The notes beneath the pieces are model-generated. The model was not told the DNA's origin, searched no databases, and worked only from the letters and a program-made list of their open reading frames with translations. A program made the position numbers and the translations under genes. From sequence record OR620964.1: a stretch of DNA of 64,000 bases. The stretch is one strand, 5' to 3'. Positions within the stretch are counted from its first letter, which is position 1; each line of letters starts with the position of its first letter. Shown here one piece after another: positions 21,213 through 53,765 of the stretch.

Positions 21213-21608
21213 CTATTCCGGTTCGTAGGTAGCAGCAGATTTGTACCGCATGTTCAAGCTCTCATTTTTCTTAAACATGGATACAGTTTCTGGCAGGCTA
21301 GCAGTAGGTTTAACGTAGGGTCTGAATCCCATTGCATAGAACAGACGTGTACTTTCAACACTACTTGTTTGCGCGCCAATATCTGCACGATAGCGACGAA
21401 TCACTTCTTTTATTAGTCCGGCACCTACCCCTTGCTTACGGTATTTATCCTCAACAAAGAAATCTGTGACAGAGTGCTTGGTAGGACTGTATGGGCCGTC
21501 AGTTAGAACAGCGATACGTCCGCGCTCTTGTGGATCAACAATGACAGTACCAAATCCTGATTGCTGGCGAGTGATGAATCCAGATGATAGACTGATTGTA
21601 ATAATCAT
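21213..21608 (-). CDS. GNAT-family acetyltransferase with N-terminal ISLS tag
   Basis: Acetyl-CoA motif A FFVEDKYRKQGVGAGLI and LFYAMGF; begins MIITISLS. Confidence 0.8.
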   Translation of the reverse strand: MIITISLSSGFITRQQSGFGTVIVDPQERGRIAVLTDGPYSPTKHSVTDFFVEDKYRKQGVGAGLIKEVIRRYRADIGAQTSSVESTRLFYAMGFRPYVKPTASLPETVSMFKKNESLNMRYKSAATYEPE

Positions 21609-21796
21609 ACAATGATGAACCTATGATGGTTACGATTTGTTTTTGGACAGAACCAGATTTCCCAGAATGTCTTTCCCATACCAAAGTTAATCATTCGTTC
21701 GTTATAGCGACGAACAAACACCATACCCTTTGGTTGGTTAGGATAGCCATAGCAGTAGTCCCAGAACGAATTAAATGCGTCTAAGATACTCTTCAT
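21605..21796 (-). CDS. Hypothetical protein, 63 aa
   Basis: GGAC RBS; TGA overlaps the GNAT ATG. Confidence 0.65.
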   Translation of the reverse strand: MKSILDAFNSFWDYCYGYPNQPKGMVFVRRYNERMINFGMGKTFWEIWFCPKTNRNHHRFIIV

Positions 21797-21813
21797 GGTG
21801 CTTGTCCTATCAG

Positions 21814-23487
21814 TTATTTTCGAACGCGAATCGCTGGGTCTTTAGACTTGTCATATCGATCTGGGCGAACGATGACAACTCCGGTAGGCCCTGTCTTAAT
21901 CTCAAGAAGGCCGGGGACTTCAAAACCTTTAGCTGTGTCCACCACTGTGAATTTCTTCGCCAGCTTCTCACGCATCTTAGCAAGCCCTTCATTGGACTTA
22001 GCGATCTTTCCGCCTTTAAGATTTCGAATCAGACCAGCATCACGGCCAACGTTGAATTTGAAGCCAACAGAGTTCAGAATTTCAGGTAGTGCCTTGTCAA
22101 TCTTTTCAGCCGTGTCACTACCTTGAGGCTTTTTTACAGCAGCAGCCTTTGCTTTTGTTCTATCTTGCTTCATTTCCTTTTTGGCGGCTATACGCGCTTT
22201 ATGCGTAGGACGCGCAATCTTACCTTTAGCCAGAACTTTAGATCGTGCTGTTTCTGCTTTCTCTCTTGCTGCCTTACTCGCAGGAGTCTGTACTTTAACC
22301 CCTACGGAATCAAAAGCTGATTGCTTAACAAACTTAGGCTTAAATGTACCACGTTTACCTGTAGCACCGAACTCAGTCAGCTTGATCGCACGAACAGCTT
22401 TCAAGGCTTTGACAACACCTGGGCCTGTAGCAATGTCCGTAGAGGACATAGGCATGTTCAAGCCCGACAGGCCGTGTTTCTTGGCATGAGAGTTTGCTTC
22501 TTTAAGCAGTGCTTTAGCTTGTTTGATATCCGCAGCACTTTTGGTTTTCTCAGTAACATACGTCGCACGTAAGGCTACTCTACGTGGGCCTGCTGGCACT
22601 TGTTTACTTTTAGCAAGCGTAGTATCTGCCTTAACGCGAGAAGTCATACCGCTGATAGCAGCAACTTTAGCTTTCTTTAACAGACCGAGGATGGCAGTAA
22701 GCTCTGGTTTCTTTGTATCTGGAATGATCAGGGTTCGAACACCAGATACTTTAGCAAATTTATAGCTAGGTGTCTTAGCAGACTCCGAGATAACGTCGGA
22801 GCATAGGGAGAGCGTGATTTTCATATTTGATTTCCGTACAATGTTTGGGTTCTCAGATGGATCAGACCTATCAAGATCATCTGATCGGAAGTTTTCTTGT
22901 GTCTCAATAGGTACGGTTAGACCTAACCCATAAGAAGCAAATATCTGCTTGAGTGACTTATGGACTTGTTCCTGTAACCATATCTCATTATCCCGACTTG
23001 GGTCTATCAAAGAGACTTCAATGATATTCTGCCTTGGGTCTACACAGGCATATTGAACACGCGCTATCTTCTGTGTGTTTAGCCACTCATTGAGAATCAT
23101 GTCTAGCTCTGGACTAAACTTAATCCCTAGGTCAGACAGCCAGAACTGAAAAGAAGATAGAGGAGGAGGTGCAGAGAGAGACGTAAACTCACCAGTAGGA
23201 TTCAGCTTTTCCATGGCAGAAGAAGCCTCGTACACGGACTGGAAGTTCTCGGCAATCGTAGCGATGTTCTTGAGCTTATAGCTATTTGTTGCCAGTCCCT
23301 TACGGATCAACTTGGCTACTTTAAGTTCGTAGTCACCAGTATCACCCTGAGAGTAGGCTACAAATGCATAGAGAGCAATACCATTATCTTCACGCAGGAG
23401 TCGATGGTCAAGTACACGGAACCCAACTATCTTTGTTAATGCCTGTGCGCTCATCTGGATTGCTGATAGAGAAATGGAGATTCTCAT
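21814..23487 (-). CDS. Two-part protein, 557 aa: N-terminal domain plus Lys/Ala-rich C-terminal part, with a probable internal start at 22824
   Basis: Begins MRISISLS; second tag MKITLSLC at aa 222; basic K/A-rich C-terminal part. Confidence 0.8.
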   Translation of the reverse strand: MRISISLSAIQMSAQALTKIVGFRVLDHRLLREDNGIALYAFVAYSQGDTGDYELKVAKLIRKGLATNSYKLKNIATIAENFQSVYEASSAMEKLNPTGEFTSLSAPPPLSSFQFWLSDLGIKFSPELDMILNEWLNTQKIARVQYACVDPRQNIIEVSLIDPSRDNEIWLQEQVHKSLKQIFASYGLGLTVPIETQENFRSDDLDRSDPSENPNIVRKSNMKITLSLCSDVISESAKTPSYKFAKVSGVRTLIIPDTKKPELTAILGLLKKAKVAAISGMTSRVKADTTLAKSKQVPAGPRRVALRATYVTEKTKSAADIKQAKALLKEANSHAKKHGLSGLNMPMSSTDIATGPGVVKALKAVRAIKLTEFGATGKRGTFKPKFVKQSAFDSVGVKVQTPASKAAREKAETARSKVLAKGKIARPTHKARIAAKKEMKQDRTKAKAAAVKKPQGSDTAEKIDKALPEILNSVGFKFNVGRDAGLIRNLKGGKIAKSNEGLAKMREKLAKKFTVVDTAKGFEVPGLLEIKTGPTGVVIVRPDRYDKSKDPAIRVRK

Positions 23488-23819
23488 TACTTCATCTTGC
23501 GTAATGCGTCTTTGGCTTTTGCCAGAGTCGATTGGTTATCAGAGTCACCAAACACACAACTAATCTTGATACCGACTTCAATCACGTTGAAGCCTTCATC
23601 CTCATCAGCCATGAGAACACCAAATCGGGCAGTATCACCGTTATAGTTGAGGAAACGGAAGTCCAGAATATCATTTGGGCCTGAGATATCAGAAGGCATG
23701 CCATCGGATACAAGCATGGCGTACAGAGATTTCTTATCCAATGCTTTCATAAAGAATGCAGTAGGAACACTTGATTCGGACTTAACATTCTTACCTAAGT
23801 TCAATTTAATTGCGGTCAT
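23487..23819 (-). CDS. Hypothetical protein, 110 aa
   Basis: GGAG RBS; TAATG coupling to the next gene. Confidence 0.8.
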   Translation of the reverse strand: MTAIKLNLGKNVKSESSVPTAFFMKALDKKSLYAMLVSDGMPSDISGPNDILDFRFLNYNGDTARFGVLMADEDEGFNVIEVGIKISCVFGDSDNQSTLAKAKDALRKMK

Positions 23820-23821
23820 GA

Positions 23822-24391
23822 TTATACTCCAACCTGTTTGGTGATTGTGATAACACGCTGGTACCAGCCGTAGATGTTATCTTCTTGTGTCGCGTCTGCC
23901 TTAGCGATGTTCTTTAGTTTCGCAATACGGCAGCCATTAAAAGCATATGCAAGGATTTTGATATCACGGACCTTACAGTAAGCAGCAAGAGCAGCCAACG
24001 TCTTAGGGCCAATGTTAGCAGCAGGCGCAAAGTCTGGATATAGTTTGCCACGTTGATTCAGGATGTTCAACTGGTCTTGCAGTTCAGCAATAGCAGCAGG
24101 TGGGCCTGAGTTAACAGCGTAATCGAACATCCACAGCGCAAGCTCTTGGCTGTACTTGGCAATCTCGTCACACTTGCAGAAGTCCCAGAAGTTGGCGCTG
24201 TAGATAGCATAAGCAATATCATAAGGCAGGTCTTTCATATCACCTTTATAGCCATATGCACGAGCATTACGCTCAGTAACGCCCCAACGAGTTGGACCAC
24301 CACGGTCAGCAGCGCGGTTTGTATACTTCTCACCACCTTCACGCTCTATTACTTCGGCAATGGCTTTCTTTCTGAATGTTAAGGCATCCAT
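23822..24391 (-). CDS. Endolysin, glycoside hydrolase family 108 with C-terminal PG_binding_3-like region
   Basis: EREGGEKY...DRGGPTRWGVT catalytic motif; C-terminal YGWYQRV. Confidence 0.9.
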   Translation of the reverse strand: MDALTFRKKAIAEVIEREGGEKYTNRAADRGGPTRWGVTERNARAYGYKGDMKDLPYDIAYAIYSANFWDFCKCDEIAKYSQELALWMFDYAVNSGPPAAIAELQDQLNILNQRGKLYPDFAPAANIGPKTLAALAAYCKVRDIKILAYAFNGCRIAKLKNIAKADATQEDNIYGWYQRVITITKQVGV

Positions 24392-24443
24392 AGATCATTC
24401 CTCAATATCGGGTTTACTCATCGAAATTATCATTAGAACGAAG

Positions 24444-24466
24444 AAAGGGCAGCCCGGAGGCCACCC
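24444..24466 (-). terminator. Rho-independent terminator, identical to the one at 15-34
   Basis: aaagggcagcccggaggccacccttt is identical at 12-37 and 24444-24469. Confidence 0.8.
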
Positions 24467-24471
24467 TTTAG

Positions 24472-24570
24472 TTAGTTCTTTTTCTTGTCTTTGTTCTCTC
24501 TGATTCGCTGTATCCAATAGATAACGGCGCAGATAAGTAATACGATAAGAACAATTGTATCAACACTCAT
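24472..24570 (-). CDS. 32-aa single-pass membrane peptide MSVDTIVLIVLLICAVIYWIQRIRENKDKKKN, absent from the ORF track
   Basis: GAGG RBS, ATG, 16-residue hydrophobic helix, basic tail, TAA just before a terminator. Confidence 0.75.
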   Translation of the reverse strand: MSVDTIVLIVLLICAVIYWIQRIRENKDKKKN

Positions 24571-24580
24571 ATTAAGCCTC

Positions 24581-24910
24581 TCAGATGTATTTAATACAGA
24601 GATAGGCCATTCCAGCCTGAGCCAGACCAACGTCCAGCACAAACAATTTACGCAATATCCAGCCTACAGAAGATATCACGTAAAGATAAATTAGCTGTGC
24701 TGCGGTAAATATCAACATTGAAGCAACAAGCATCCAGATCAATATATCCGTGTTAGATATAAAGAACGTGCAAACTACAGGAGCAATAATAGAACCAATT
24801 AACGAGTCCGACCATGCGAGTTGTTGTAGTTTGAACACAGGTGATATTAGCCCATATGCAGTTGTTGCACAACACACTGACCAAAAGAGAAGCATATAAT
24901 CCAATGGCAT
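24581..24910 (-). CDS. Multi-pass membrane protein, 109 aa; holin candidate
   Basis: Three to four hydrophobic segments; close to the endolysin gene; holin role is inference. Confidence 0.65.
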   Translation of the reverse strand: MPLDYMLLFWSVCCATTAYGLISPVFKLQQLAWSDSLIGSIIAPVVCTFFISNTDILIWMLVASMLIFTAAQLIYLYVISSVGWILRKLFVLDVGLAQAGMAYLCIKYI

Positions 24911-24934
24911 TTTTATACGTCCAACATTAGAAAA

Positions 24935-25651
24935 TCAAACACCTTGGTTACCAACGTATTTATCTGTGGCATTATCCACTTTCTCTACGTTACCTTTTAT
25001 GTATCCGAGTTCAAATATCTGAACACGATGCTTAACAACAGCCTGACCCATTGTCTCACACATACCAAGACGTAAGTCACGGAAGGCAGCACGTAGTCTA
25101 GAACACACAGGCTTACGTAATATGCGCAGTAAGTTCTCTCTGTGTGCGGCTGTGATACGAATAGACAGCTTATCGAAATTGGCTTCGAGTTCCATTTCCG
25201 TACCACCTTCATATATCCAATGGCAGATTATGCTTGTGATAGGTTTCTGGTGTGTCTTCGAAGGTAACTTATAGATATAAGTCATTAGCTCATGGAACAA
25301 GCTACCTTCAATAGACTGCGCAATCAAATCATCCAAGTAGCTACCAATAGGAACTGCTTTTGGTTTGATAGGTGCTACAGTTCCTAACTCGCGATCTACC
25401 TCAAGTCCATATCGCTCAAGACTTTCAGTATGACCAAATACAAATACGTTATATAGTGGCATGTTTCGTATCGCCACTACATTCCTATCAAACTCGCGAG
25501 TGCCTACAATAAATATATTCTTTCGATACTTCTTAGATGGATCAAGGAATCCACCAAGAGGCACAAAAGTTATCTGAGGATTCTTTCGCTTTGATTTAAG
25601 CCAAGCATATACTTGCTCTGGGCTGTGGCGTGTAATTGCTATTACTGGCAT
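24935..25651 (-). CDS. Hypothetical protein, 238 aa
   Basis: Long ORF overlapping the upstream stop. Confidence 0.8.
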   Translation of the reverse strand: MPVIAITRHSPEQVYAWLKSKRKNPQITFVPLGGFLDPSKKYRKNIFIVGTREFDRNVVAIRNMPLYNVFVFGHTESLERYGLEVDRELGTVAPIKPKAVPIGSYLDDLIAQSIEGSLFHELMTYIYKLPSKTHQKPITSIICHWIYEGGTEMELEANFDKLSIRITAAHRENLLRILRKPVCSRLRAAFRDLRLGMCETMGQAVVKHRVQIFELGYIKGNVEKVDNATDKYVGNQGV

Positions 25652-26321: not shown

Positions 26322-28634
26322 CTATATGGTTTTGACACTAAGCGTAGACACGCCATTCTGTTTTGTTACTAACCACTGCTTATCAGAGAAGTGCTCAACA
26401 GCTAATGGTGTAATCCAGTATATGTTGGGTACAGTCTGCTTTAACAATGGTAGATAGTTTTCTATCAGATGATCTTTCATTGCATCACTACACCCTTGAT
26501 CAGGCTCATCAAGGATGATGAAGTCTGTTCTGCGATCAGCTGGGATAAATGGTATTATAGCAAACGCATACAACAAGCGGAAACAACTGGATTCAGATCC
26601 ACTCATGATACTAATGTCAGTTGTTGACTTAGACGTCAGGCGGGTTATTGTGGCTGTAACACCTTGTGCGCTAGTGCCAAGAGTAAAATGCATAGGCTCG
26701 GCAAACACACGACCACTATTCTCATTCAGCCTGTTCTCAATTAACTTGAGGCGTGATTCAAGTGCCTTAAGTTTTAACGCATTGTTACTATACGCCTTGT
26801 AAAGAATCTCAAATATTTGACGACTCTCAATCAGCGGAGCTAGCTTACTAAGTTTTGCATCTAGCTCTGATATGGTTGAAGCATAGTGATCAAACTCTTG
26901 GCAACGGGACTGTAACTTCTGTGCCTTAGTATCAGTATCAGATATTTCAATAGCAAGGTCTTTAATCTCTTTATCAAGATCCTTATACTTTTTGTTTAGT
27001 TGCTTGTGCGACATCGAAGGCTTTTTAAACGCTTTCAATGTTTGATTCAGTTCTTGCAGTTCCTCCAACTCACCTATTCTGGCTTTAGTCTTCTTACGAC
27101 TACGCTTAGGCTGTTCAACCTTCTTAGGCTTCTTAAGGGATTCAAGTTTTGCACTTAGCTTATCATACTTCTTAGCTTGCTCGAACTCTTTAGTCAGGCG
27201 ATCAATTTTCTTACCCAAGGCAGAAAGTTCTGTCTTTAGTTCCTTACGACTACGCTTAGGCTGCTTAACAGGTGACTTAAGCAAATCATTAAGGTACTTG
27301 TTAGACGTAAGCCATTCAATATCCTTTGTCGCCTGATCAATCGTAGCAGAAGCACCTTGCGCCGCACGTTTCATACTCTTCATATCAACGTCTTGGCTGC
27401 AAGTAGGGCACGTAGTTCCATCAACATGCTTTACGAGTTTTTCGTAGGCACTAACAATGGCTTTAGATTGCGCTCTGATGTCGGCAGCTTCCTCAATAGT
27501 TCGTTTAGGACTTTTTGACTTAGATAGCTTTGATTTGAGGTGTTTGATTTGTTCTTGGTATTCGGCATATAGGTCTTCCTGTTCTTCCAGCGCTTCTAAT
27601 TCTGCCTCAAGTTCCTCTTCTTCTTTGACGAGCTTTGAGTGCCGCTTGACAAGTTTCTTTGTATCAACATCACCAGACGATGATAACTCAGCCAGTTCTT
27701 TTTCCCAGCGTTTCTTTTGCTCGGAATACTCTTGGCTATCAGCTTCATACTCAGCAAAGTCTGCATGTTGCTGTAGCTCTTTACGCAGAGTCTTTAACTC
27801 GGACTTGATATCTTTTGATACAACACCAAGCTCGGCAATCAACTGCAATGTTTGCTCATACTGCTTGGCTTCGTTACGCAATGTGCTTACAGTAACAAAC
27901 TGCTCATACAATTCATTACGCAATGCCTTACGTGTATCAGATAGCTCGATCAGTTTCTTTAGATTCTTTCTGTCTCCCTTGGTTACACCTAATGCTTTTT
28001 GTTTACGCTGTGTAACATCAAGAATATCAGCCAGTCCCTTAGATTCTGTTTCAGCATCTTTGGCTGCATCAAGGTTCTGTTTCACCTTGGCTCTGATCAA
28101 ATCAAACTCATCCAACTTAAAGAAGTCAGACATATACTTTAAGCGTTCCGCAGGTCGAGCACGTTGGAACGGATGAGGTATCTGGCTCTGTAGGTAGCAG
28201 TAGCTATAGAACTCATCGGCAGATAGTGGAAAGTGTTTCTTGATCCAGCTTCGAGCAACGTCTTGACGCTCTATCTTTTGATCTTCTCCGTTATAGGACA
28301 CTTTATACTTGCTAGCCGTTTGCTGTACTTTTATGATCCCACCTTGAGGCGATCGCCACTCAAGTGATATCTCACTTCCCTTAGCAAGCATATTAGTCTT
28401 TGCTTTCTTGGCAAGTGCGAGAGGATCTGCTTCAAACAATAAGTTTGGGATAGTACCGAACATCATACTCTTGCCAGCGCCGTTGCTGTTCTTCTTAACA
28501 TCGAGGCTGTCATTATTAAGACCGCTTACCGTTACAAATCCCTGCTCATCAAGGTCGGTAAGTTCAAGGTCTTTATATACTCCAACATTTTTCAATTGGA
28601 TTGATTTGAGGCTGATGCCTGAATGTTCTGTCAC
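26322..28634 (-). CDS. sbcC: SbcC/Rad50/gp46-like SMC-type ATPase
   Basis: Walker A NGAGKS, coiled coil with CPTC zinc hook, signature MSGSE, Walker B FIILDEPD. Confidence 0.92.
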   Translation of the reverse strand: MTEHSGISLKSIQLKNVGVYKDLELTDLDEQGFVTVSGLNNDSLDVKKNSNGAGKSMMFGTIPNLLFEADPLALAKKAKTNMLAKGSEISLEWRSPQGGIIKVQQTASKYKVSYNGEDQKIERQDVARSWIKKHFPLSADEFYSYCYLQSQIPHPFQRARPAERLKYMSDFFKLDEFDLIRAKVKQNLDAAKDAETESKGLADILDVTQRKQKALGVTKGDRKNLKKLIELSDTRKALRNELYEQFVTVSTLRNEAKQYEQTLQLIAELGVVSKDIKSELKTLRKELQQHADFAEYEADSQEYSEQKKRWEKELAELSSSGDVDTKKLVKRHSKLVKEEEELEAELEALEEQEDLYAEYQEQIKHLKSKLSKSKSPKRTIEEAADIRAQSKAIVSAYEKLVKHVDGTTCPTCSQDVDMKSMKRAAQGASATIDQATKDIEWLTSNKYLNDLLKSPVKQPKRSRKELKTELSALGKKIDRLTKEFEQAKKYDKLSAKLESLKKPKKVEQPKRSRKKTKARIGELEELQELNQTLKAFKKPSMSHKQLNKKYKDLDKEIKDLAIEISDTDTKAQKLQSRCQEFDHYASTISELDAKLSKLAPLIESRQIFEILYKAYSNNALKLKALESRLKLIENRLNENSGRVFAEPMHFTLGTSAQGVTATITRLTSKSTTDISIMSGSESSCFRLLYAFAIIPFIPADRRTDFIILDEPDQGCSDAMKDHLIENYLPLLKQTVPNIYWITPLAVEHFSDKQWLVTKQNGVSTLSVKTI

Positions 28635-29098: not shown

Positions 29099-29107
29099 TA
29101 TTTACAG
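29099..29107 (-). promoter_or_regulatory. Putative phage promoter motif CTGTAAATA
   Basis: Exact motif after a terminator, heading the sbcC operon. Confidence 0.6.
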
Positions 29108-29152: not shown

Positions 29153-29584
29153 TTATTTCTTCTTGGAGTTCTGTACGGTAGATTTAGGGCGCTTGATTTT
29201 ACGCAAGGCTACTCTTGCCTCAACTATCTTCTTACCTAGTTCTGCACGACGTGTCTTGGTCTGCTCTGTGTCCTGATCAGTACCTTTGAGTTTATCAAGT
29301 CTATTCCACTCAGTGACAAGACGATCAACAACCTGAGCGCGACCAACACGCTGTTGTTGCATACGAACAATATCCTGATTGGTCTTCCTACTTACCTGAG
29401 CACCTTTAAGTTTCTCTCTGGCTGTTTTAACACCGCTCTCATTTTGAGTTGCTTTGGTAAGCAGACTTCTGCGGGTCTGCTCATTGCGTACGGCTTTCTT
29501 GAGATTGTCTTTTGAGTTATCAAGTACAGTCTGTGCTTCCTGTAGTGGGCTATTACGCATACTCAGGCTGATTACAATTTCCAT
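29153..29584 (-). CDS. Basic coiled-coil protein with N-terminal MEIVISLS tag, 143 aa
   Basis: Start refined to ATG 29584 (GGAG RBS); the ORF-track start 29611 lies inside a terminator. Confidence 0.8.
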   Translation of the reverse strand: MEIVISLSMRNSPLQEAQTVLDNSKDNLKKAVRNEQTRRSLLTKATQNESGVKTAREKLKGAQVSRKTNQDIVRMQQQRVGRAQVVDRLVTEWNRLDKLKGTDQDTEQTKTRRAELGKKIVEARVALRKIKRPKSTVQNSKKK

Positions 29585-29600: not shown

Positions 29601-29629
29601 AAAAAGGGCACACCGATTAAGGCACGCCC
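29601..29629 (-). terminator. Rho-independent terminator
   Basis: GGGCGTGCC-TTAATC-GGTGTGCCC-TTTTT. Confidence 0.8.
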
Positions 29630-29734: not shown

Positions 29735-30253
29735 CTACTCTTCGTCTAATTCTTCTTCTTCCTCTACATCTGATGTAGAACGCAGTATTGATGGCCCTCG
29801 GTAGCCCTTACTTAAGATTTTATAAGCAGGACGTACGGGCGTATTTTCATAGTATTCTTTCAGTTCTTCAATATTACGGAACCATTGCAGGTCTTGACTT
29901 TTAAACGGAATAATCAAGAATTGTTGCTCACCGTAGACATTGATAGCTAAGAATACGTCACCGCTGAATGTAGGAGTTGCAAGTGGTAGTGGTTTCATAA
30001 GATTCTTAAAGTCATTAGTATCCTTTAAAACCTTATCACCTACAATCCACGACGCGCCGTCGGTTCCACTTTTAACAATGCGAACAGTTTTGCTACCAGA
30101 AGTGAACTGGCCAAATTCGTCAGCATGAAAGCGCCCTGCACCAAACATATAACGTGCAAGTCCTTTCAGGTCGATCGTAGAGTACGGATGCGTTACAGTG
30201 CAGCGGTCTTTGTTTTGAACAGTTAGACCGGACATAGAGACGAAAATCCTCAT
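29735..30253 (-). CDS. Hypothetical protein, 172 aa, with MRIFVSMS tag and acidic tail
   Basis: Clean ORF between terminators. Confidence 0.75.
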   Translation of the reverse strand: MRIFVSMSGLTVQNKDRCTVTHPYSTIDLKGLARYMFGAGRFHADEFGQFTSGSKTVRIVKSGTDGASWIVGDKVLKDTNDFKNLMKPLPLATPTFSGDVFLAINVYGEQQFLIIPFKSQDLQWFRNIEELKEYYENTPVRPAYKILSKGYRGPSILRSTSDVEEEEELDEE

Positions 30254-30331
30254 TTGTGAAATCTCGCATTGTTATCATTAATTGTCGTGTATTGAAATTA
30301 GAAAGAAAGTTCAAATTATGCCATAAATAAG

Positions 30332-30352
30332 AAAGGGAACCCGAAGGCTCCC
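30332..30352 (-). terminator. Rho-independent terminator
   Basis: GGGAGCC-TTCG-GGTTCCC-TTT. Confidence 0.8.
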
Positions 30353-31688: not shown

Positions 31689-31697
31689 TATTTACAG
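31689..31697 (-). promoter_or_regulatory. Putative phage promoter motif CTGTAAATA
   Basis: Exact motif between a terminator and the dnaX start. Confidence 0.6.
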
Positions 31698-34060: not shown

Positions 34061-35023
34061 TTAGGCAATCTCTTTCAAACTATTCTTCATGGCCTTACGC
34101 AGAGTCTTACCTACGTCTACACCATTTACATGTCGAGCAAACGTATGAGCAAATAAAGTCTGTGGAGATTTTAATACAGCCTTATCCATGTCTGGTCGGC
34201 CCTCAACAACTTCAATCTCGCCTGGCCACATATCTGCGACTGCTTCTGGTTTAGCTTCGGCCAGTAGCTCAAGCTCTCGTACACTTACCTGACGCTGACG
34301 TGCAATCGTTCGGAAGATAAGATCGACAAAAGGAAGCATGTCTTCCGATACTACGTTCTTAACATCTTTGGCATCACCAGACCGTAGAAAGTCTTGAAGG
34401 AGATCTGCCAGAGTAGCTTTATCCAGACGATGCACATTACGCAGTTTATTAAATAGTACAATCCACTTAGCCTTACGACTGGTAGCAACCAAGTGAGTAT
34501 AAACCGATTCGCCAAGTGCAATCAGAAGACGTTGATATACGTCCTCGATAACATTGTCTTGGTCTAAGAAGATATTGATCTCATCTGCCCATTCTTCTTT
34601 ACGGAACTTAGAACGGAACGTATGTGTCTTTGTGCCAGACTGCTGAACAAAACTGATTCTGGTGCAGCGACGGACAGCTTCTTTAAGTCGGTACTTATCG
34701 ATAATCTTGGGCAGTCGCTTAAGCGCTTTACGGCTTGTCTTTTTAATATCTTCTGGCCGTCCTAGGCATACGAGTTTTGGCATGCCTGAGATTTCACCCA
34801 TGTCATGTACTGGACGAACAGTGCATCCGAAAGCAGAACTACCAGGCTCAGGGTCAGGGCCGAGAACACAAAGCAAGTCAGTATCTGGACTGAACTTAAT
34901 TGTCTCAACTTCTTTGTTCATCATGGTATTTACCAAGATGCCGACAGTCTTACCTGTAGCGAGAACAAGCATATTTTTATTGCCTACACGGACAATAAGA
35001 TAATCACTCTCAATATGTTTCAT
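34061..35023 (-). CDS. Hypothetical protein, 320 aa
   Basis: GAGG RBS; long ORF. Confidence 0.85.
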   Translation of the reverse strand: MKHIESDYLIVRVGNKNMLVLATGKTVGILVNTMMNKEVETIKFSPDTDLLCVLGPDPEPGSSAFGCTVRPVHDMGEISGMPKLVCLGRPEDIKKTSRKALKRLPKIIDKYRLKEAVRRCTRISFVQQSGTKTHTFRSKFRKEEWADEINIFLDQDNVIEDVYQRLLIALGESVYTHLVATSRKAKWIVLFNKLRNVHRLDKATLADLLQDFLRSGDAKDVKNVVSEDMLPFVDLIFRTIARQRQVSVRELELLAEAKPEAVADMWPGEIEVVEGRPDMDKAVLKSPQTLFAHTFARHVNGVDVGKTLRKAMKNSLKEIA

Positions 35024-39672: not shown

Positions 39673-40272
39673 TTATTTTTTCCTTTTCACACGATTCGCC
39701 AATTTCTTTCCAATTTGTCTAAAAATACGCTCTACAGTTTCGCTATCATGCGATTGCATTGCATTCATTAGCTGTTCACCTTGGGCAGAACTTAGCTCAG
39801 GCATCACCATTTTAAGCATTTGTGACCGTGCTTTAGCAGCTGGGCTCTTAGAACGTGAAACAGAGCACTGTTCACCATGATTCTGTCGTTCTACTAACAG
39901 AACCCGTCGCTTATCTCCGAATATCTCATTGAATATGTCGCCAAATATATCTTTTAGATGGTTTTGGTGCTCAGGACTGCATTTTACGAATTTGCTGACG
40001 CTATCATGAGTGAAAGGATCTGACCCCTCTGCGGAGCCGTCTACGGCCTGTGTGGCTGTCTCCCTGACCAGATCCTCCGGCAAGGATTTGAACCCTTTCT
40101 TCGCAGGACGCTTCGCCGGAACATACGATCCGTTGTCCTCAAACGGAACCTTACCTGTTAACTCATTGGGCTTTGTTTCATCCAAAGGTGGCATATCTTG
40201 ACGGGCATCATCCGTTGTCCGTGTGAAGCGCCGCGTAATAAGGCCGTCATTTAAGCTGATTGATATCTTCAT
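39673..40272 (-). CDS. Hypothetical protein, 199 aa, with MKISISLN tag
   Basis: GGGG RBS; charged low-complexity sequence. Confidence 0.8.
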   Translation of the reverse strand: MKISISLNDGLITRRFTRTTDDARQDMPPLDETKPNELTGKVPFEDNGSYVPAKRPAKKGFKSLPEDLVRETATQAVDGSAEGSDPFTHDSVSKFVKCSPEHQNHLKDIFGDIFNEIFGDKRRVLLVERQNHGEQCSVSRSKSPAAKARSQMLKMVMPELSSAQGEQLMNAMQSHDSETVERIFRQIGKKLANRVKRKK

Positions 40273-42075: not shown

Positions 42076-42084
42076 CTGTAAATA
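42076..42084 (+). promoter_or_regulatory. Putative phage promoter motif CTGTAAATA
   Basis: Exact motif on the plus strand, 35 nt upstream of ATG 42119. Confidence 0.6.
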
Positions 42085-46313: not shown

Positions 46314-46352
46314 ACCCTATCTCCACACTAATTTCATCATGTATATAGCTAG

Positions 46353-46361
46353 TATTTACAG
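46353..46361 (-). promoter_or_regulatory. Putative phage promoter motif CTGTAAATA
   Basis: Exact motif oriented toward the lone minus-strand primase gene, 40 nt upstream. Confidence 0.65.
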
Positions 46362-47781: not shown

Positions 47782-48195
47782 ATGCTGCGAGACTACCGAC
47801 GTTCTGTCTACCGCATACAAGAAGCAATAAGTTTGATGCTATGTGCTGGGCAGGACACCACTGAAATGGAAAACCTGATGCTGGCGCTAAAGAAACCACA
47901 TCAGGTAGAAGATAAATCATATTGCGTTACTGTTATGTTGTGCTCTCATACATGCTTGTCACTAGCTAGGTATTATGATGGCCAGAGAGCACTGCGTAAT
48001 AAGCAGCGTGTTCTGATCGATAAGTTCAAGACACCTGAGATAACGCTGAAAATAAAAGATCTAGAGCATTCTGATCTTGCAGTTGCGTCCAATATTGAAA
48101 ACTACTCACGTCTGCTTAGTTATCGGATAGGTATTATTGATGCTATCGTCCAAAACAAGCAGACAAATAATAGATACTATCGTCAGGAGCCCTAA
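47782..48195 (+). CDS. Hypothetical protein, 137 aa
   Basis: GAGG RBS; TAATG coupling. Confidence 0.75.
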   Translation: MLRDYRRSVYRIQEAISLMLCAGQDTTEMENLMLALKKPHQVEDKSYCVTVMLCSHTCLSLARYYDGQRALRNKQRVLIDKFKTPEITLKIKDLEHSDLAVASNIENYSRLLSYRIGIIDAIVQNKQTNNRYYRQEP

Positions 48196-48602
48196 TGGAA
48201 ATCGTAATCAGCCTGAGTGCTACCACTGCGGATAAGAGCCGCACTAAGTTGAATAGTCAGGAGTCAAACACTGGCCATGCAGATTTGAGTGAGTATACAA
48301 ATCTAGAGAAGAAACTGCGCCTGCTCAAAGAAGATAAAGAGCGGGAGAAGATGACAAAAGAAGCTAATCCGGGTGATACTGTAAAGGATAAGAAGAAAGC
48401 TAAACCCGAAAAACCAGCGGCAGATGATACAGGAGATTCGGAAGATGATGATACCTCAACAGATGACGCTGGATCTAGTGATAAGGATGGATCAGGTGGA
48501 AAACCTAAGCCCAAAAAATCAGGAGCAGATGATGAGGCAGACGGGGATGAATTTGGAGACGAGGACTTTGGCGACGAAGACTTCGGAGACGAGGACGCCT
48601 AA
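48195..48602 (+). CDS. Acidic, disordered protein with MEIVISLS tag, 135 aa
   Basis: GGAG RBS; D/E/G-rich tail ending in DFGDE repeats. Confidence 0.8.
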   Translation: MEIVISLSATTADKSRTKLNSQESNTGHADLSEYTNLEKKLRLLKEDKEREKMTKEANPGDTVKDKKKAKPEKPAADDTGDSEDDDTSTDDAGSSDKDGSGGKPKPKKSGADDEADGDEFGDEDFGDEDFGDEDA

Positions 48603-49059: not shown

Positions 49060-49712
49060 TGGCATATAAATCCCTAGCCAAGGCGCCTAAGAAAAGTCCT
49101 GCTGCTAAGAGAGCAGAGATTCGCGCTAAGGTATCACGGCAGATAAAAGCCGGAAAATATGGAGCTGCAATTAAAACAATGAGCGCTGCAAATAAGTCAC
49201 GGCGTATGACAAAAGGTGAAAAGCGCGCAGTCTTAATAGTTCCATTTACTGCTAAGATTGTTCCTCAGCCACCACGCACACCGAAGATGGATGCTGGTGT
49301 TAGCTTAACAAAGTTGATGCGTAATACACCAAGACTGATGCATGAGAATGCCTCAGAGTGTTATGTGTCTGGAGTTAAGAAAGCTAAGACGAAGAAAGGT
49401 CTGCCTATAATTAAGGCCGATGTTCGTCACAAAGATCCTCTGCGTCCTAACAAAACAGTTCGCATTCATGAATGTATGTTTGTTGGGCTGGATGATCCAA
49501 ATAAGCCTATCAGCAAACAGAAGCGCGTTATGGCAACTTGTGCTTGCGAAAACTGGGTGTTCATGTGGGAGTATGCTTGTGCAGAGCATGGCGCTGCCCG
49601 TATCATCTACGGTAACGGTGAACCTCCCACTATGACTAACCCATCGAAGACGCCTGGTCTATGCAAACATTTAATGGCACTTGCTGTTAAGATAAAGGCC
49701 AATGGTGATTAG
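49059..49712 (+). CDS. SWIM zinc-finger protein with basic N-terminus
   Basis: TCACENW...NPSKTPGLCKHL (CxC...CxH). Confidence 0.75.
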   Translation: MAYKSLAKAPKKSPAAKRAEIRAKVSRQIKAGKYGAAIKTMSAANKSRRMTKGEKRAVLIVPFTAKIVPQPPRTPKMDAGVSLTKLMRNTPRLMHENASECYVSGVKKAKTKKGLPIIKADVRHKDPLRPNKTVRIHECMFVGLDDPNKPISKQKRVMATCACENWVFMWEYACAEHGAARIIYGNGEPPTMTNPSKTPGLCKHLMALAVKIKANGD

Positions 49713-49777
49713 TATTTCCTCTATTTGAAAAATATGTAAAGTAGTGTTATACATTCTCTACAATAGGAATCGCAATA

Positions 49778-50002
49778 ATGAAGAATACCTGCATCGTAAC
49801 AATTGGTGTTGCTATGAATCAGACTGTTCAGGCTAACATTGACCGTGCGCTAAAAGCTGGCGCAACTGTGACTGCGGTTCAAGACTCTTACCAAGTAGAA
49901 CTCCCACAGGGAACTGACGTGACCTATGGATCTGATGGTTCAATGTCTTTCCACAAACATATCGGCCCTGAGTTCGATGCAGGCTATTCCTTACCTATGT
50001 AG
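49778..50002 (+). CDS. Hypothetical protein, 74 aa
   Basis: AGGA RBS. Confidence 0.65.
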   Translation: MKNTCIVTIGVAMNQTVQANIDRALKAGATVTAVQDSYQVELPQGTDVTYGSDGSMSFHKHIGPEFDAGYSLPM

Positions 50003-50011
50003 GTATTGATT

Positions 50012-50458
50012 ATGGATCGCGTAATCTTTAACAAAGACTTATTGAAACCTGTTACGACTGTTGATGATATATTAAGAGAGCGTGAGGCTGCTGAGATACA
50101 GAAACACCTCATGGAAATACAAGCGCAGTCTTTCTACGGTGCTGTTACCAATTGTATTTCCAAGCCCACATCATTTAGCATGGAGGATATGCTTAAGGCT
50201 GTAGAGTCAGTAACGAACGCTATTGCTGAATCACATTCAATCCTACTTGATTCAGGACTTGATCTTGATATCGAATATCCATTAACACGGAATGATCTGC
50301 ATCTGGCTATGCGTCGAAACAATATGCCAGAAGACCAGATAGAAAGATCATTTCCAATATCCAAGAAGATAAGCATTGAAGGTTGTGAGAAATTTATCAC
50401 ATACAAATATGTTATTTTCTCTGACCTAGCAAATGTAGGAACTAAGTATGGGATGTAG
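50012..50458 (+). CDS. Hypothetical protein, about 148 aa
   Basis: Start refined to ATG 50012; operonic. Confidence 0.75.
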   Translation: MDRVIFNKDLLKPVTTVDDILREREAAEIQKHLMEIQAQSFYGAVTNCISKPTSFSMEDMLKAVESVTNAIAESHSILLDSGLDLDIEYPLTRNDLHLAMRRNNMPEDQIERSFPISKKISIEGCEKFITYKYVIFSDLANVGTKYGM

Positions 50459-50660
50459 CTCATGTGGACGACGAGTACAGAGAATAACGTATGGTGGTCA
50501 ACGGGAAGTAATGCCTGATCCTACACCAACTGATTCGCTATCTGCCGCTCGACTTACTCCTATGGGATGGGTTAGTACCTGCACCAAGTGTGGTACACAA
50601 TCATTGCCTCAACCCTTCCCTGATTCTATCACTCCTGCCTGTATGTGTAAACGGGATTAA
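50448..50660 (+). CDS. Small Cys-rich protein, 70 aa
   Basis: MGCSSCG...CTKCG...CMC; AGGA RBS. Confidence 0.7.
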   Translation: MGCSSCGRRVQRITYGGQREVMPDPTPTDSLSAARLTPMGWVSTCTKCGTQSLPQPFPDSITPACMCKRD

Positions 50661-50663
50661 GCA

Positions 50664-51443
50664 ATGAAAAGAACGTATGTGAGTTATAACCAGCACAATC
50701 ATGTGCAACAACTACGGTATATCGCTTTTTATCTGGATTGTTTAAAGGCGATTAAGTCTGGTCTCTTGTTACCAGAATGCCCTGACTACTATCTGAGTAG
50801 CGAATCTGAGGACACAGAAGAGTACATGATCCGATTGCATGTGCTTGCTGATAACTATAACAAAGTTGTGCGCCAACATAAAACAAGCGGTGCATTTGGT
50901 GTAGAGTATCAAAACATCTTCAAGTTATATGCCTATATCTCGGGTAGCTTCGATACTCTCTATACTGGCCAGCAGTTAGAATATGTTACGCAGATTGCGG
51001 CACTACGCGAACAAATGCCAGAACTTGATAGTATTGTCGTTCCTGAAATCTATGCACGGGCAGAAGACCAAAGTGCTTATGATTACGCACTACAGGTTAT
51101 GGCGATACTCTCTAAGCAAGAACATTCTCTTGCATACTTTGCATGCCTGACTAGCTACATCATGGAGGATAGCGATTGTTGGATGCCACAGCCTCCTCCA
51201 CCAGTAATCAGTTCCTTCCGTGATATGCCTTACACATTAGCTCAATGGTATGATGCTGTCGTAGCATCAATCACACGCACCGTAAGTAATCTATACCGAG
51301 ATATGGATACTCGTTTTGATGAATTTCGCTATTACGGTACTCATAACATTCAAGCCAAGGCACATGCACTAAATTCTCAACTTGAGCAAGCCTTGTTAGA
51401 TAATAATGGAACACTCCCTTACATGAACGAGGACAAGGCATAA
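50664..51443 (+). CDS. Hypothetical protein, 259 aa
   Basis: Long operonic ORF; TAATG coupling. Confidence 0.8.
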   Translation: MKRTYVSYNQHNHVQQLRYIAFYLDCLKAIKSGLLLPECPDYYLSSESEDTEEYMIRLHVLADNYNKVVRQHKTSGAFGVEYQNIFKLYAYISGSFDTLYTGQQLEYVTQIAALREQMPELDSIVVPEIYARAEDQSAYDYALQVMAILSKQEHSLAYFACLTSYIMEDSDCWMPQPPPPVISSFRDMPYTLAQWYDAVVASITRTVSNLYRDMDTRFDEFRYYGTHNIQAKAHALNSQLEQALLDNNGTLPYMNEDKA

Positions 51444-52363
51444 TGTCTATCGCACGTTTTATCGAAGAGAAACAACTACAAGCACTGTCTGATAAGATTC
51501 AGAAAGAGACTGGTCTCCTTATTCAGTGGCAGGTACTTCGTGGTACTACTATCCCTACCAAAGTAGATTCCGTGAAAGCCAATGTTGAAGAACTCCTTGG
51601 CAGGAAAGTACCTGTGACTGCAAATAACTCAAGGCCTACGGTTACGTACTCTAACTTGCTTGGGGATACTGTTCTTCGTAAGGCACCAAACGTGTTGGAT
51701 ATTCACATTGCTAAACTCCATGGCATCCAATACACGCAGTCGGCATTTGATGATGCTCGTAATTCAATACGAGATCTTATTATTAGTGATCCTAACTATC
51801 ACGGCCAATCTGTCATAAGCAGCAACGAGGACGCAGTGCTATATCGTGTGTTCTATTCGAGTGAATGGTCATGCAAGGAACATCCAGAACTTAACGTTGG
51901 GCGTCCAGTCGGTATGTATCATTGCCAACTTTGTAACAAGCTGCAGGTAGCTGGAATTCTACATAGCAATGCTATCAAAGACCCTATCACGCCATTTGAA
52001 AAAATAACCGAAAATGCCTGGGCTGCTCTTTCTGGATGGGAATATATTAATTATTCCGTATCAGATTCCTGTTTATCTAAGTACCCAACTGCTTTGGTGT
52101 TAGCCGAAGATGGTTTAAACTTCTACATCACATATGAGGATCAGATTCATCCAGAAGTACCGTGTATCGATCTTGAGATCCACTATGATGCTAGACGAGC
52201 ATATGGAAAGACTATCAGACAGCATGTAGAATCTGTGGTGACAGGCTGCCTTACTGACCTTGGTGCTAAGTATACGAACAGTATAATCTCATACGTACCT
52301 GGCCCAATTGACTGTGTTATGATTCGTTTCTTTGAGAAGGCAGCAAATGAAGCCAAACAATAA
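51443..52363 (+). CDS. Hypothetical protein, 306 aa, with a small Cys/His metal-binding motif
   Basis: CKEHP...GRPVGMYHCQLC...AGILH. Confidence 0.8.
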   Translation: MSIARFIEEKQLQALSDKIQKETGLLIQWQVLRGTTIPTKVDSVKANVEELLGRKVPVTANNSRPTVTYSNLLGDTVLRKAPNVLDIHIAKLHGIQYTQSAFDDARNSIRDLIISDPNYHGQSVISSNEDAVLYRVFYSSEWSCKEHPELNVGRPVGMYHCQLCNKLQVAGILHSNAIKDPITPFEKITENAWAALSGWEYINYSVSDSCLSKYPTALVLAEDGLNFYITYEDQIHPEVPCIDLEIHYDARRAYGKTIRQHVESVVTGCLTDLGAKYTNSIISYVPGPIDCVMIRFFEKAANEAKQ

Positions 52364-52994
52364 TCAATTCCTAATCGTTCGGCAGCATCTTATGGCGCTA
52401 CTGTTTTATGTACGTTGCTATACATACGCGCCAAGCAATACCTTATTACCTGTTCCCTATGTGAAAGATTTGCCTACGCTGGAACCAACTGCTATTCGAA
52501 ATATGGCGCAGCGGGCATACTGTGATCTTATCTCATATGGAGCGCCTGAGTTCGTATTGCATCAAGCATTTAGTCTTTTGTTGCTTATCAATCCACAGGC
52601 AGATAAGCAACAATTAAGCGGTATATACGGACTGCGTGGTGCTGTTGGTGAATACTTTATTCAATCACCTTTGTCTGGAAATAATCACGTATGTGATAGC
52701 ACTGTTAGACTTCGGCTTGTTGAGACAGCAACAGCTATCGCCTCTGCGCATTATCTTGTGCAACTACATGCCCAGATTATAAAGTTGCATTCGTATATTC
52801 CCCTGCCTGCTGAGGCATTACCTTTCGATTCTATGACATTCCAAGATATACAATCTTGGTCTTCATCTGAACTTGTCCGAATCAACCAAGAAGCTATTGC
52901 TGTAGGCATGAAATTCCCACAACTTGCTGTGTTAGACTCGCACTATGCCCATGCTGATAGATACTTCGCTACTTATGGATATGAAAATGAATAA
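52347..52994 (+). CDS. Hypothetical protein, about 215 aa
   Basis: Start refined to ATG 52347 (AAGG RBS). Confidence 0.75.
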   Translation: MKPNNNQFLIVRQHLMALLFYVRCYTYAPSNTLLPVPYVKDLPTLEPTAIRNMAQRAYCDLISYGAPEFVLHQAFSLLLLINPQADKQQLSGIYGLRGAVGEYFIQSPLSGNNHVCDSTVRLRLVETATAIASAHYLVQLHAQIIKLHSYIPLPAEALPFDSMTFQDIQSWSSSELVRINQEAIAVGMKFPQLAVLDSHYAHADRYFATYGYENE

Positions 52995-53433
52995 AGCTCG
53001 TGGTGGATACTGGTATTGCGTACCTGATGAGAAATCCTTGTCAATGCTTCGTGGACTGGCCTCAGCGGTTTCTGAACCAGATGACATGGAAGGACTACAT
53101 GTAACTCTGGCCTATGATAATCGAAATCCTTTATCTTCTGTTCAGGTTAATGAAGAAGGTAGCTGGGATGCACGAATTGTAGGAACGGCAATGTTTGGGC
53201 AGGATAAGGACACACTGGTGCTTCTTCTTGAATCGGATGAACTTCAGGCAGAGCATAAGCGTATACACTCTGATGGTGCAAAGTTTGACTTTACTCCGTA
53301 TGCACCACACATTACCCTTGTTACGAATGCACGGGAACTTGAGCGTGAGTGTATTCAAGATATTCTGGATCATCCGAAATGCCCACCATTGATTATTCGT
53401 CTTATTGATCAATGCCGAGAGCTGATCGACTAA
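52987..53433 (+). CDS. acb1: 2H phosphoesterase, Acb1 (T4 57B)-like anti-CBASS nuclease
   Basis: Two HxT motifs, LHVTLAY and PHITL; LVLLLES...GAKFDFTPYAPHITL closely resembles the Acb1 C-terminus as I recall it; start 52987 or 52981. Confidence 0.7.
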   Translation: MNKARGGYWYCVPDEKSLSMLRGLASAVSEPDDMEGLHVTLAYDNRNPLSSVQVNEEGSWDARIVGTAMFGQDKDTLVLLLESDELQAEHKRIHSDGAKFDFTPYAPHITLVTNARELERECIQDILDHPKCPPLIIRLIDQCRELID

Positions 53434-53441
53434 ACATATAA

Positions 53442-53464
53442 GGGAGCCTTAGCGTTCCCTTTTT
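53442..53464 (+). terminator. Rho-independent terminator
   Basis: GGGAGC-CTTAGC-GTTCCC-TTTTT. Confidence 0.75.
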
Positions 53465-53483
53465 CCAATTCTAGGAGCAAACA

Positions 53484-53765
53484 ATGCATATCTTAATCAG
53501 TTTGTCTAAAGACCAAACGCTTGCAGAGAAAGCAGAAGAAGCTGCTTCCCGTAAGGCTACTATGTTGATTCAAGGCCCGGATGACCTTGAGAATATGCAG
53601 GAAACGGAGAGCACCAAAGAAAGTGCTAAAAAGACAGAGCAAGAGAAGAAGTTAGAAGATCAGGAAAAACGGTTGTCTGGACTAGGTAAGCCTGACCCGG
53701 AGAAAGATCCAACGCACAGCGGCTCCGATATTCAAGATGAGCATGACCAAAGAATTCAACTATAA
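53484..53765 (+). CDS. Acidic, charged protein with MHILISLS tag, 93 aa
   Basis: GGAG RBS; lies between a terminator and a promoter motif. Confidence 0.8.
   Translation: MHILISLSKDQTLAEKAEEAASRKATMLIQGPDDLENMQETESTKESAKKTEQEKKLEDQEKRLSGLGKPDPEKDPTHSGSDIQDEHDQRIQL

Follow-up and report, generated by a model that had tools for sequence, protein, structure and literature searches.

The 64,000-nucleotide stretch of DNA analysed here (hereinafter, the window) is 100% identical to positions 62001-126000 of the record of Yersinia phage fHe-Yen9-02 (OR620964.1; whole genome 248,678 bp), a jumbo myophage with Yersinia enterocolitica O:9 as its host, and encompasses seven genes whose products start with versions of the same octapeptide, such as MEIVISLS, to which we refer as the tag. 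The kin of fHe-Yen9-02 include Erwinia phage Y3, Alexandra-like and Yoloswag-like Erwinia phages, and Dickeya phages AD1 and JA11; together, these phages belong to the 'Lupandier group', which was defined around Pseudomonas phages Lu11 and PaBG (PMC7412058). Five of the tagged genes are on the minus strand, namely, 087c (21213-21608; tag MIITISLS at 21585-21608), which encodes a small GNAT acetyltransferase (Pfam E 2e-6); 089c (21814-23487; MRISISLS at 23464-23487), which encodes a 557-residue lysine-rich protein; 100c (29153-29584; MEIVISLS at 29561-29584), which encodes a basic protein rich in lysine, arginine, glutamate and glutamine; 102c (29735-30253; MRIFVSMS at 30230-30253); and 120c (39673-40272; MKISISLN at 40249-40272). 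The remaining two, on the plus strand, are 130 (48195-48602; MEIVISLS at 48195-48218), whose product has a very acidic C-terminus, and 140 (53484-53765; MHILISLS at 53484-53507), which encodes a 93-residue acidic protein. A tag-like sequence, MKITLSLC, is present also in frame inside 089c, at residue 222 (22801-22824, minus strand), and is followed by SDVISESAKTPSY. All eight sites are located where the original prediction had placed them, the first seven each coincide with the start of an annotated GenBank coding sequence (CDS), and the acetyltransferase that this prediction named among the bearers is the GNAT protein 087c.

The frequency of the tag at gene starts is far above the chance expectation. 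A six-frame scan of the complete 248,678-bp genome with the pattern M.I.[IVL]S[LM] yielded 11 matches, of which nine are annotated starts, one is the in-frame site within 089c, and one is out of frame. The nine tagged starts (M-x-I-x-[IVL]-S-[LM]) belong to a set of 342 annotated CDS, all re-derived and validated, and include, beyond the seven in the window, those of 008c, a Nudix hydrolase, and 049c, a PGDYG-domain protein. The expected number is 0.03, whether derived from the amino acid composition or from how often the core occurs internally, and a column-shuffle null that preserves the position-wise N-terminal composition gave a mean of 0.17 and a maximum of 4 in 20,000 shuffles. When a position-specific scoring matrix (PSSM) built from the tags was applied, the nine genes scored 15-21 bits and the next best start 6.2 bits; given this bimodality, the tagged genes are a discrete class and not the tail of a distribution. 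Placement at the extreme N-terminus matters: of the 20 places in the 79,626 residues of the fHe-Yen9-02 proteome where the relaxed core [ILVM].[IVL]S[LMTEQ]S matches, 10 begin at residues 1-3, compared to 0.13 expected.

In fHe-Yen9-02, the bearers of the tag include three with Pfam domains (GNAT, Nudix and PGDYG) and others in which no domain was detected, and no domain common to all of them was found with Pfam or PHROG. When the first ten residues were removed from the tagged proteins of the entire clade, BLAST comparison gave 19 clusters, which represent at least 15 families unrelated in sequence, so that a short peptide at the extreme N-terminus is common to unrelated proteins of the same phage. 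The bearers have a higher charge and a lower hydrophobicity than other proteins (Mann-Whitney p about 0.001). These results, including the comparison to a shuffled null that the original prediction had proposed as a check, bear out its observation of a tag on unrelated, mostly highly charged proteins; no prior description of the motif was found in the literature searched.

The tag is not a peculiarity of one phage. Motif tests covered whole proteomes for the complete genomes of fHe-Yen9-02 and Y3, whereas JA11 tags were counted in 41 kb and the comparison with Lu11 was restricted to the syntenic 41 kb. Y3 has nine tagged starts, mostly in orthologs of the Yersinia bearers, the others being in different families (gp193, gp206); some of the Y3 tags have substitutions at position 3 (MMLNVSLS, MIVFISLS, MEMLISLS, MRVMISLN). 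At least nine genes are tagged in JA11, the more distant relative, and gene-start tags are found also in AD1, Alexandra, Yoloswag and relatives from IMG/VR, TTG starts included. The orthologs of 100c are tagged in all five of Y3, AD1, Alexandra, Yoloswag and JA11; those of 120c start with MRVMISLN (Y3 gp220) and MKVKISLN (Alexandra), and those of 130 with MIVFISLS (Y3), MEIYVSLS (AD1 and Alexandra) and MHVLISLG (JA11); Y3 gp240, in the position equivalent to that of 140, starts with MEMLISLS. Metagenomic GNAT homologs are tagged too, one of them having a tag-like start and a 60-residue insert before the core. In the Nudix family, the tag drifts to SMS and STS (the I-S-T-S variant) and degenerates to TLD in Salmondvirus phage JA29. 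Over 60 distinct tags, the consensus is M-[E/K/Q]-I-[F/L/Y/M]-[V/I]-S-L-S.

In the syntenic region of Lu11, no start scored above 10 bits with the PSSM, homolog searches with 102c and with the GNAT protein gave few matches, to close relatives only, and pattern scans of IMG/VR (clamp loader and 102c) gave nothing beyond the same clade. The tag-using phages are a sub-clade of the Lupandier-group jumbo myophages that consists of fHe-Yen9-02, Sasquatchvirus, Alexandravirus, Yoloswagvirus and Salmondvirus, and on the sample examined, the tag looks restricted to this enterobacterial sub-clade. A tagged protein of JA11, JA11_190 (MELLISLS..., 225 residues; 21835-22512, plus strand of the JA11 stretch), is an ADP-ribosyltransferase of the ART-PolyVal family (PF18760, E 2e-27); in its record, it is annotated merely as hypothetical.

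The conservation is in the peptide and not in the nucleotides, the latter outcome being the one that the original prediction had named as fatal to its proposal. Among the 60 distinct 24-nucleotide tags, Ser6 is encoded by AGT, AGC, TCA, TCC, TCT and TCG, Leu7 by all six of its codons, and Ser8 by both AGY and TCN; because all these synonymous codons are used, a nucleotide element is excluded, and we conclude from the codon tables that selection is at the peptide level. The initiator methionine appears to be a part of this peptide. Residue 2 is small in none of the 60 tags, compared to 41% of the starts genome-wide (p about 4e-5, 19 families), being mostly acidic or neutral instead (glutamate in 31 and glutamine in 10 of the 60), so the methionine should be retained; residue 4 is usually aromatic or hydrophobic. 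In the AlphaFold2 model of 087c (overall predicted local distance difference test score, pLDDT, 81), residues 1-8 have pLDDT below 50 and the confident core begins near residue 12; the model of 102c is poor (mean pLDDT 48) and usable solely to note that residues 1-7, also below 50, are not confidently placed. Thus, the predicted strand is not confidently incorporated in either fold.

Several of the tagged genes are informative individually. Residues 1-189 of the 089c product, its N-terminal half, are orthologous to Y3 gp195, which starts with MKIFVSLA, and the internal MKITLSLC aligns with the N-termini of a paralogous family of separate Y3 genes, gp187, gp194 and gp206. The 089c gene thus corresponds to at least two genes that are separate in Y3, and given this alignment, it is likely a fusion of two tagged genes in which the N-terminus of the second is kept inside, or else translation may start internally at MKITLSLC. 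The 100c gene adjoins the SbcC gene, and 102c is cut off from the clamp-loader gene upstream of it by its own terminator (30332-30352) and a CTAATTT motif. Terminator-like, GC-rich hairpins with almost the same sequence, GGGAGCC-loop-GGTTCCC and then a T-run, lie directly upstream of the Shine-Dalgarno (SD) sequences of 074c, 100c, 102c and 140 (11789-11808, 29601-29629 and 30332-30352 on the minus strand, and 53442-53464 on the plus strand, respectively). The acidic tail of 130 is overlapped by about 160-180 nucleotides, on the plus strand, by the long open reading frame (ORF) that contains gene 131 (from 48424; annotated start 48445), which makes the region 48424-48602 another long overlap on a low-complexity tail.

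Some orthologs have gained or lost the tag, and among paralogs, too, there are both tagged and untagged ones. In Yoloswag gp200, the ortholog of 102c, the tag is missing and the start corresponds to the methionine that is residue 7 elsewhere; the remnant upstream (19990-20010 of the Yoloswag stretch) is four nucleotides shorter and out of frame, comprising an out-of-frame ATG AGG followed by 8 nucleotides compared to 12 in the relatives. The two MEIVISLS tags, of 100c and 130, are on opposite strands and identical at 23 of the 24 nucleotides, just as the original prediction stated, and no similarity was seen in the flanks; this pair, together with the gains and losses among orthologs, lends only modest support to the image of a mobile cassette in that prediction. 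For each of the 20 other pairs of tags in the window, the number of shared nucleotides is between 10 and 17. In Y3, the orthologous pair is identical at 17 nucleotides by hand count. The near identity of the MEIVISLS pair fits a short-patch exchange without proving it.

The promoter context of the tagged genes also is of interest. The 9-mer CTGTAAATA, annotated as a 'middle/late promoter' in the record of Lu11, has 24 sites in fHe-Yen9-02, almost all of them about 40 nucleotides 5' of genes that include those for replication and repair and for a phage sigma factor, and looks like a conserved middle-class promoter; in the window, it occurs at 10918-10926, 16311-16319, 18349-18357, 19021-19029, 29099-29107, 31689-31697 and 46353-46361 on the minus strand, and at 42076-42084 and 53767-53775 on the plus strand. 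A k-mer screen of the intergenic regions revealed another motif, CTAATTT[T/C], with 29 sites; at 19 of these, a gene in the same orientation starts 20-100 (mostly 31-57) nucleotides downstream. Among the genes so preceded are both sheath genes, the unit of 029c and the major capsid protein (MCP), the unit of 242 and the portal, 334c, the PAAR/baseplate unit, 316c and 323c; the motif also precedes tail genes and is conserved in Y3. When genes were assigned to classes by the nearest upstream motif, that is, from motif position alone, the structural genes had 21 CTAATTT and 5 CTGTAAA, and the replication genes 2 and 17, respectively (Fisher p = 3e-6).

The CTAATTT sites in the window are at 12666-12672, 16266-16272, 17198-17204 and 30295-30301 on the minus strand and at 46328-46334 and 61378-61384 on the plus strand. 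The site at 30295-30301, promoter-like and of the putative late or structural class, is 48 nucleotides upstream of 102c, and that at 46328-46334 is 57 nucleotides upstream of 127, the first gene of the packed run 127-128-129-130; outside the window, the motif precedes 009c, the stop codon of which overlaps the start of the tagged 008c. CTAATTT thus heads the units of 008c, 102c and 130 in fHe-Yen9-02 and those of five tagged families in Y3 (gp121 to gp120, the tagged Nudix protein; endolysin to gp195/gp193; gp208; gp221 to gp220). Judging by the position of these motifs, most of the tagged genes look co-regulated with the virion genes.

Variant forms of the tag occur on genes of the head and tail modules and on one giant protein. 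In the head module, three genes away from the prohead protease (032c), the ORF of 035c continues for 73 codons on the upstream side of its annotated start, as far as an ATG that has a well-spaced SD sequence and from which the product would start with MLISLSQTPVWWNELT... (26553-27590 of the record, minus strand, outside the window), a short form of the tag. The extension is kept in Yoloswag (MLISLSQNQDWW) and pEa_SNUABM_5 (MLLSLSNSPDWW), and overlaps the 3' end of the glycosyltransferase gene 036c by 218 nucleotides. In a three-way comparison, the differences within it are mainly in third codon positions (18:5:9, 16:9:5 and 20:5:9), which supports translation, so the annotated start of 035c appears to be wrong and about 200 nucleotides of the overlap with 036c seem to be dual-coding. 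The 035c orthologs of the Y3 and Alexandra type are without the extension; a homolog scan with the single 035c protein gave no match, and an alignment-based scan found homologs. In the tail module, 022c, located between two tail-tube genes, starts with MLLLLSTS, and its Y3 ortholog, gp133, with MLIFLSES.

The giant protein is 070c (1858-9234, minus strand), a 2458-residue helicase with the short variant MLISTS (9217-9234, minus strand). Its orthologs keep x-I-S-T-S at their starts (Yoloswag MLISTS, Y3 MINISTS, SNUABM_7 MMNQIISTS, JA11 MQIFSTS), and I-S-T-S is the variant seen also in the Nudix orthologs. Of the looser S-x-S starts listed in the original prediction, this one is therefore kept in relatives, whereas the S-x-S of MATSISL at 11768 is not conserved. 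The helicase ortholog of PaBG, gp202, described as a 221-kDa 'RuvB helicase-like' protein, is one of the 14 Coomassie-visible bands of the virion (PMC7412058, Table 1). The Lu11 ortholog, Lu11_0099, has no MLISTS-like start.

What could be the function of the tag? The original prediction had interpreted it as a capsid-targeting signal, and what stands of this interpretation is a peptide-level signal located strictly at residue 1 of unrelated proteins and gained and lost among orthologs and paralogs. Virion targeting itself derives indirect support from the late-class promoter context, from the ART and GNAT domains, which are of the kind found in injected polyvalent proteins, from the variant tags on head-module and tail-module genes, and from the virion band of the PaBG helicase ortholog. 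On balance, we give a probability of roughly one half to the reading that the octapeptide is a virion-targeting tag, with or without cleavage. Under this scenario, the sequence (f)Met-x-[I/V/L/M]-x-[V/I]-Ser-[Leu/Met/Thr]-Ser would be an N-terminal address label on a changing set of unrelated late proteins, and the exposed strand of hydrophobic residues and serines would dock on a single common partner, such as the scaffold or core, the prohead protease or the inner surface of the capsid. The cargo, conceivably comprising the Nudix, GNAT and ART enzymes, the PGDYG proteins, charged DNA-associated proteins and the giant helicase, would be enclosed and later delivered with the DNA; the strand might itself be, or abut, a prohead-protease site (S-x-S). 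The address most likely is the assembling virion, above all the interior of the prohead, although it could be the tail or another late assembly instead; the partner, the packaging, the cleavage and the injection of the tagged proteins we infer.

A bolder version of the virion-targeting scenario, which we consider tentative, holds that the strand is dual-purpose, docking into the prohead protease or core and then being cut at S-x-S, that a regular expression would predict the whole injected proteome, that short-patch exchange of the tag re-assorts this set, and that eight residues would suffice as a loading handle. Were this the case, the separate ART, GNAT, Nudix and PGDYG enzymes, the charged DNA-associated proteins and the 270-kDa helicase would amount to a 'distributed polyvalent protein'.

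A number of observations weigh against virion targeting. Neither a cleavage motif nor a Glu-type site common to the bearers follows the tag; the acidic sites found are those of individual families, S-x-E-S-[NT]-T-G in that of 130 and P-L-[QE]-[ED] in that of 100c. In several families, the tag directly abuts a conserved domain. The loss in Yoloswag gp200 indicates that at least one family tolerates the absence of the tag, and because PaBG packages its helicase whereas the Lu11 ortholog is untagged, the helicase family does not need the tag everywhere. The variant on the tail-module gene 022c makes an address in the tail possible as well as one in the head. The co-regulation with virion genes is judged from motif position only; in fHe-Yen9-02, nothing closer than versions of CTAATTT with one mismatch precedes the endolysin unit (087c, 089c) or the 121c-120c unit, and no late-type motif was found for 049c and 140. 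Finally, no virion proteome or N-terminome of a tag-bearing phage (fHe-Yen9-02, Y3, AD1, JA11, Alexandra or Yoloswag) was found in the literature.

Of the explanations that do without virion targeting, the one that survives best, though still unlikely, is that, late in infection, the tag docks the proteins on a common non-virion partner, either because a host or phage protease, such as 110c, reads it as a degron, or because a chaperone or a replication- or lysis-associated assembly uses it as a handle; in both cases, the proteins would share a fate, such as timed destruction or co-localisation, without being packaged. An exposed hydrophobic strand at the N-terminus, with the methionine kept, does resemble recognition motifs of proteases and adaptors, the conserved 'peptidase' gene 110c (34061-35023) lies among the tagged genes in all the relatives, and some tagged genes are next to replication or repair genes, as 102c is to the clamp loader and 100c to SbcC. 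Yet 102c is insulated from the clamp-loader gene by the terminator and the structural-class motif, variants of the tag are found on head-module and tail-module genes, and the domain types of the cargo are those of injected effectors. The composition of residue 2 also differs from that of the ClpX N-motif 2, which reportedly needs a basic residue (the work is that of Flynn and colleagues from 2003), and in part on this ground, a ClpX-type N-motif was rejected.

It is also conceivable, but rather doubtful, that the tag is only a substrate of the prohead protease, of the form phi-x-S-x-S (phi, a hydrophobic residue), that happens to be at the N-terminus, with targeting performed by other parts of the proteins. 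In the MCPs of the clade, [LI]-V-[HQ]-S-x-S is conserved in the propeptide region, around residues 61-68, and removal of the sequence up to this point would match the mass loss of roughly 20% reported for the PaBG MCP (PMC7412058). Among the matches to the relaxed core in fHe-Yen9-02, only 10 are not N-terminal, and the MCP site, LVQVSES, belongs to these; the N-termini of the portals carry V-R-S-Q-S or F-V-S-E-S; x-S-E-S|A is present 12-18 residues from the start in 068c, 090c, the second half of 089c, and Y3 gp187 and gp194; and Y3 gp133 has S-E-S at tag positions 6-8. However, removal of eight residues would have no evident point unless these had acted beforehand, the MCP motif is not conserved in Lu11 and NCTB, and the general phi-x-S-x-S motif is enriched N-terminally only about 2-fold once the canonical tags are counted. 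For the two latter reasons, a general S-x-S cleavage code was rejected. As a lead, S-x-S could still be a protease site, in which case the tag would be both the docking strand and the scissile site; a PDB sequence search with the prohead protease 032c and the peptidase 110c gave no match. A second recurrent N-terminal pattern, M-[ST]-x-I-K-L-...-S-E-S-[AS]-x-x-[KP], exemplified by MSILKFKETISSESATK and MTAIKLNLGKNVKSESSVPT, was noticed in 068c (44-1186, minus strand), 090c (23487-23819, minus strand) and Y3 gp174, gp187, gp194, gp196 and gp249; possibly, this is an extended leader with the same S-x-S at its end.

Another, improbable, explanation is that the tag is an inherited or recombined structural beta-strand without a signalling role, for instance, one involved in homo- or hetero-dimerisation as in ribbon-helix-helix (RHH) proteins, the strands of which resemble phi-x-phi-S-phi-S. 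Some families do have more than eight residues in common, as in SLS-A-x-x-P-S-Y (gp206, JA11_180 and Alexandra gp189) and in G[FL]ITR[QR], present in both 087c and 120c, and in the GNAT homologs, I-S-L-S-S-G-F adjoins the core. Against this, the folds of the bearers are unrelated (Nudix, GNAT, ART, PGDYG), without a shared Pfam domain, AlphaFold2 leaves the strand unintegrated, and neither the strict location at residue 1 nor the retention of the methionine would be explained. The RHH fold itself was rejected after no RHH match was detected in the bearers at Pfam E <= 1, or likewise in later scans at E <= 0.01-0.05.

An mRNA element at the start codon, such as an operator or enhancer, or an effect of the nascent peptide on translation, is very improbable. 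Operators of the T4 RegA type, which overlap start codons, are a precedent, and AATCAG recurs in several fHe-Yen9-02 tags; but over the 60 tags, every synonymous codon is used at the Ser, Leu and Ser positions, including switches between AGY and TCN, the start codon varies, and the upstream contexts range from a strong SD sequence to no SD sequence and to ATGA or TAATG overlaps. The mRNA or translation element was therefore rejected, the nucleotides not being conserved beyond what the peptide needs. Least credible of all is recognition of a Ser/Ile-rich amphipathic N-terminus by the type III (injectisome or flagellar) export apparatus of the hosts, all of which, in the tag-bearing clade, have such systems: the resemblance is one of composition only, synthetic Ser/Ile sequences being tolerated as type III signals according to what Lloyd and colleagues are said to have found in 2002, but such signals are degenerate, in contrast to the nearly fixed [VI]-S-L-S, the tag mostly has an aromatic or hydrophobic residue at position 4 and frequently an acidic one at position 2, there is no rationale for exporting late phage enzymes, and variant tags are on virion-module genes. 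A Sec or lipoprotein signal peptide, which would have a hydrophobic h-region of about 10-15 residues behind a basic n-region, was also rejected, the tag having just three or four hydrophobic residues that are followed by Ser-Leu-Ser and a charged sequence; the rejection of the Sec signal and of the ClpX-type motif drew on the composition at residues 2 and 4 and on length.

If the virion-targeting reading is correct, a one-line regular expression lists the proteins that this clade of jumbo phages delivers with its DNA, and about 10 'hypothetical proteins' per genome become candidate first-strike effectors against host defence, transcription or nucleotide signalling. The tag would then be the third independent N-terminal packaging code, after those of T4 and P1, and by far the shortest; it would be a compact handle for loading proteins into large-capsid phages of Enterobacterales; and because it is essentially absent from the Lu11 region examined, a comparison that addresses the origin of the code would be possible. 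A replication-type helicase of the size of 070c inside a capsid would in itself merit study. Whatever the function, the motif corrects the annotation of the 035c start and flags the likely fusion in 089c.

Assuming that the analogy holds, the closest functional analog of the tag is the capsid targeting sequence (CTS) of phage T4. A conserved CTS, which directs their encapsidation into the scaffolding core, is all that the T4 internal proteins IPI-IPIII share (PMC3012670), and the CTS permits loading of foreign proteins (PMC3012670, PMC9024508). Like the tag, the CTS is short, located at the extreme N-terminus, and the sole shared feature of a diverse, fast-changing set of small charged proteins. 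The lineage and the sequence code are different, however, so that no homology is proposed; the bearers of the tag include enzymes and proteins of up to 717 residues (2458, counting the helicase variant); and the T4 leader ends in the gp21 consensus, with glutamate at P1, whereas no such site follows the tag. In phage P1, the first 30 residues of DarB are sufficient to target a reporter to the capsid (PMC9024508). This N-terminal signal on a large anti-defence enzyme is comparable to the tags on the large tagged or variant-tagged proteins, but its length is about 30 residues, a single protein is known to carry it, and it requires other Dar/Hdf proteins, compared to eight residues on about 10 proteins per genome here. 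The N-terminal cargo signals of extracellular contractile injection systems (PVC) and the cargo-loading peptides of encapsulins are, like the proposed tag, short peptides at a protein terminus through which unrelated cargo enters a particle of phage origin, the lumen of a tail tube and a shell of the HK97 fold, respectively; PVC signals are disordered and some 50 residues long, the peptides of encapsulins are mostly found at the C-terminus, and neither is known to resemble the tag beyond an S-L dipeptide.

In phiKZ and SPN3US, which also are jumbo myophages, many packaged proteins have a short motif at which a prohead protease processes them (PMC5694885, PMC7411985). Unlike the tag, the propeptides of these proteins are long and mutually unrelated, without a common N-terminal label. 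The element that they share reportedly is the cleavage motif, S/A/G-x-E. With respect to the cargo, the comparison is to the polyvalent proteins: ART and GNAT domains are described as parts of proteins injected with the phage DNA, T4 Alt being the prototype (PMC5512222, PMC7824862). Similarly to the bearers of the tag, among which domains of this type are ART-PolyVal (JA11_190), GNAT (087c) and Nudix (008c), the polyvalent proteins (Iyer et al. 2017) combine ART-PolyVal, GNAT and hydrolases of nucleotide signals for the first moments of infection. In the polyvalent proteins, however, the domains are fused, often to a virion anchor of the MuF type, whereas in the phages described here, the tagged proteins, in which Pfam scans gave no match to MuF, are single-domain proteins or proteins of unknown fold, and these activities reside in separate small proteins, each with a tag of its own.

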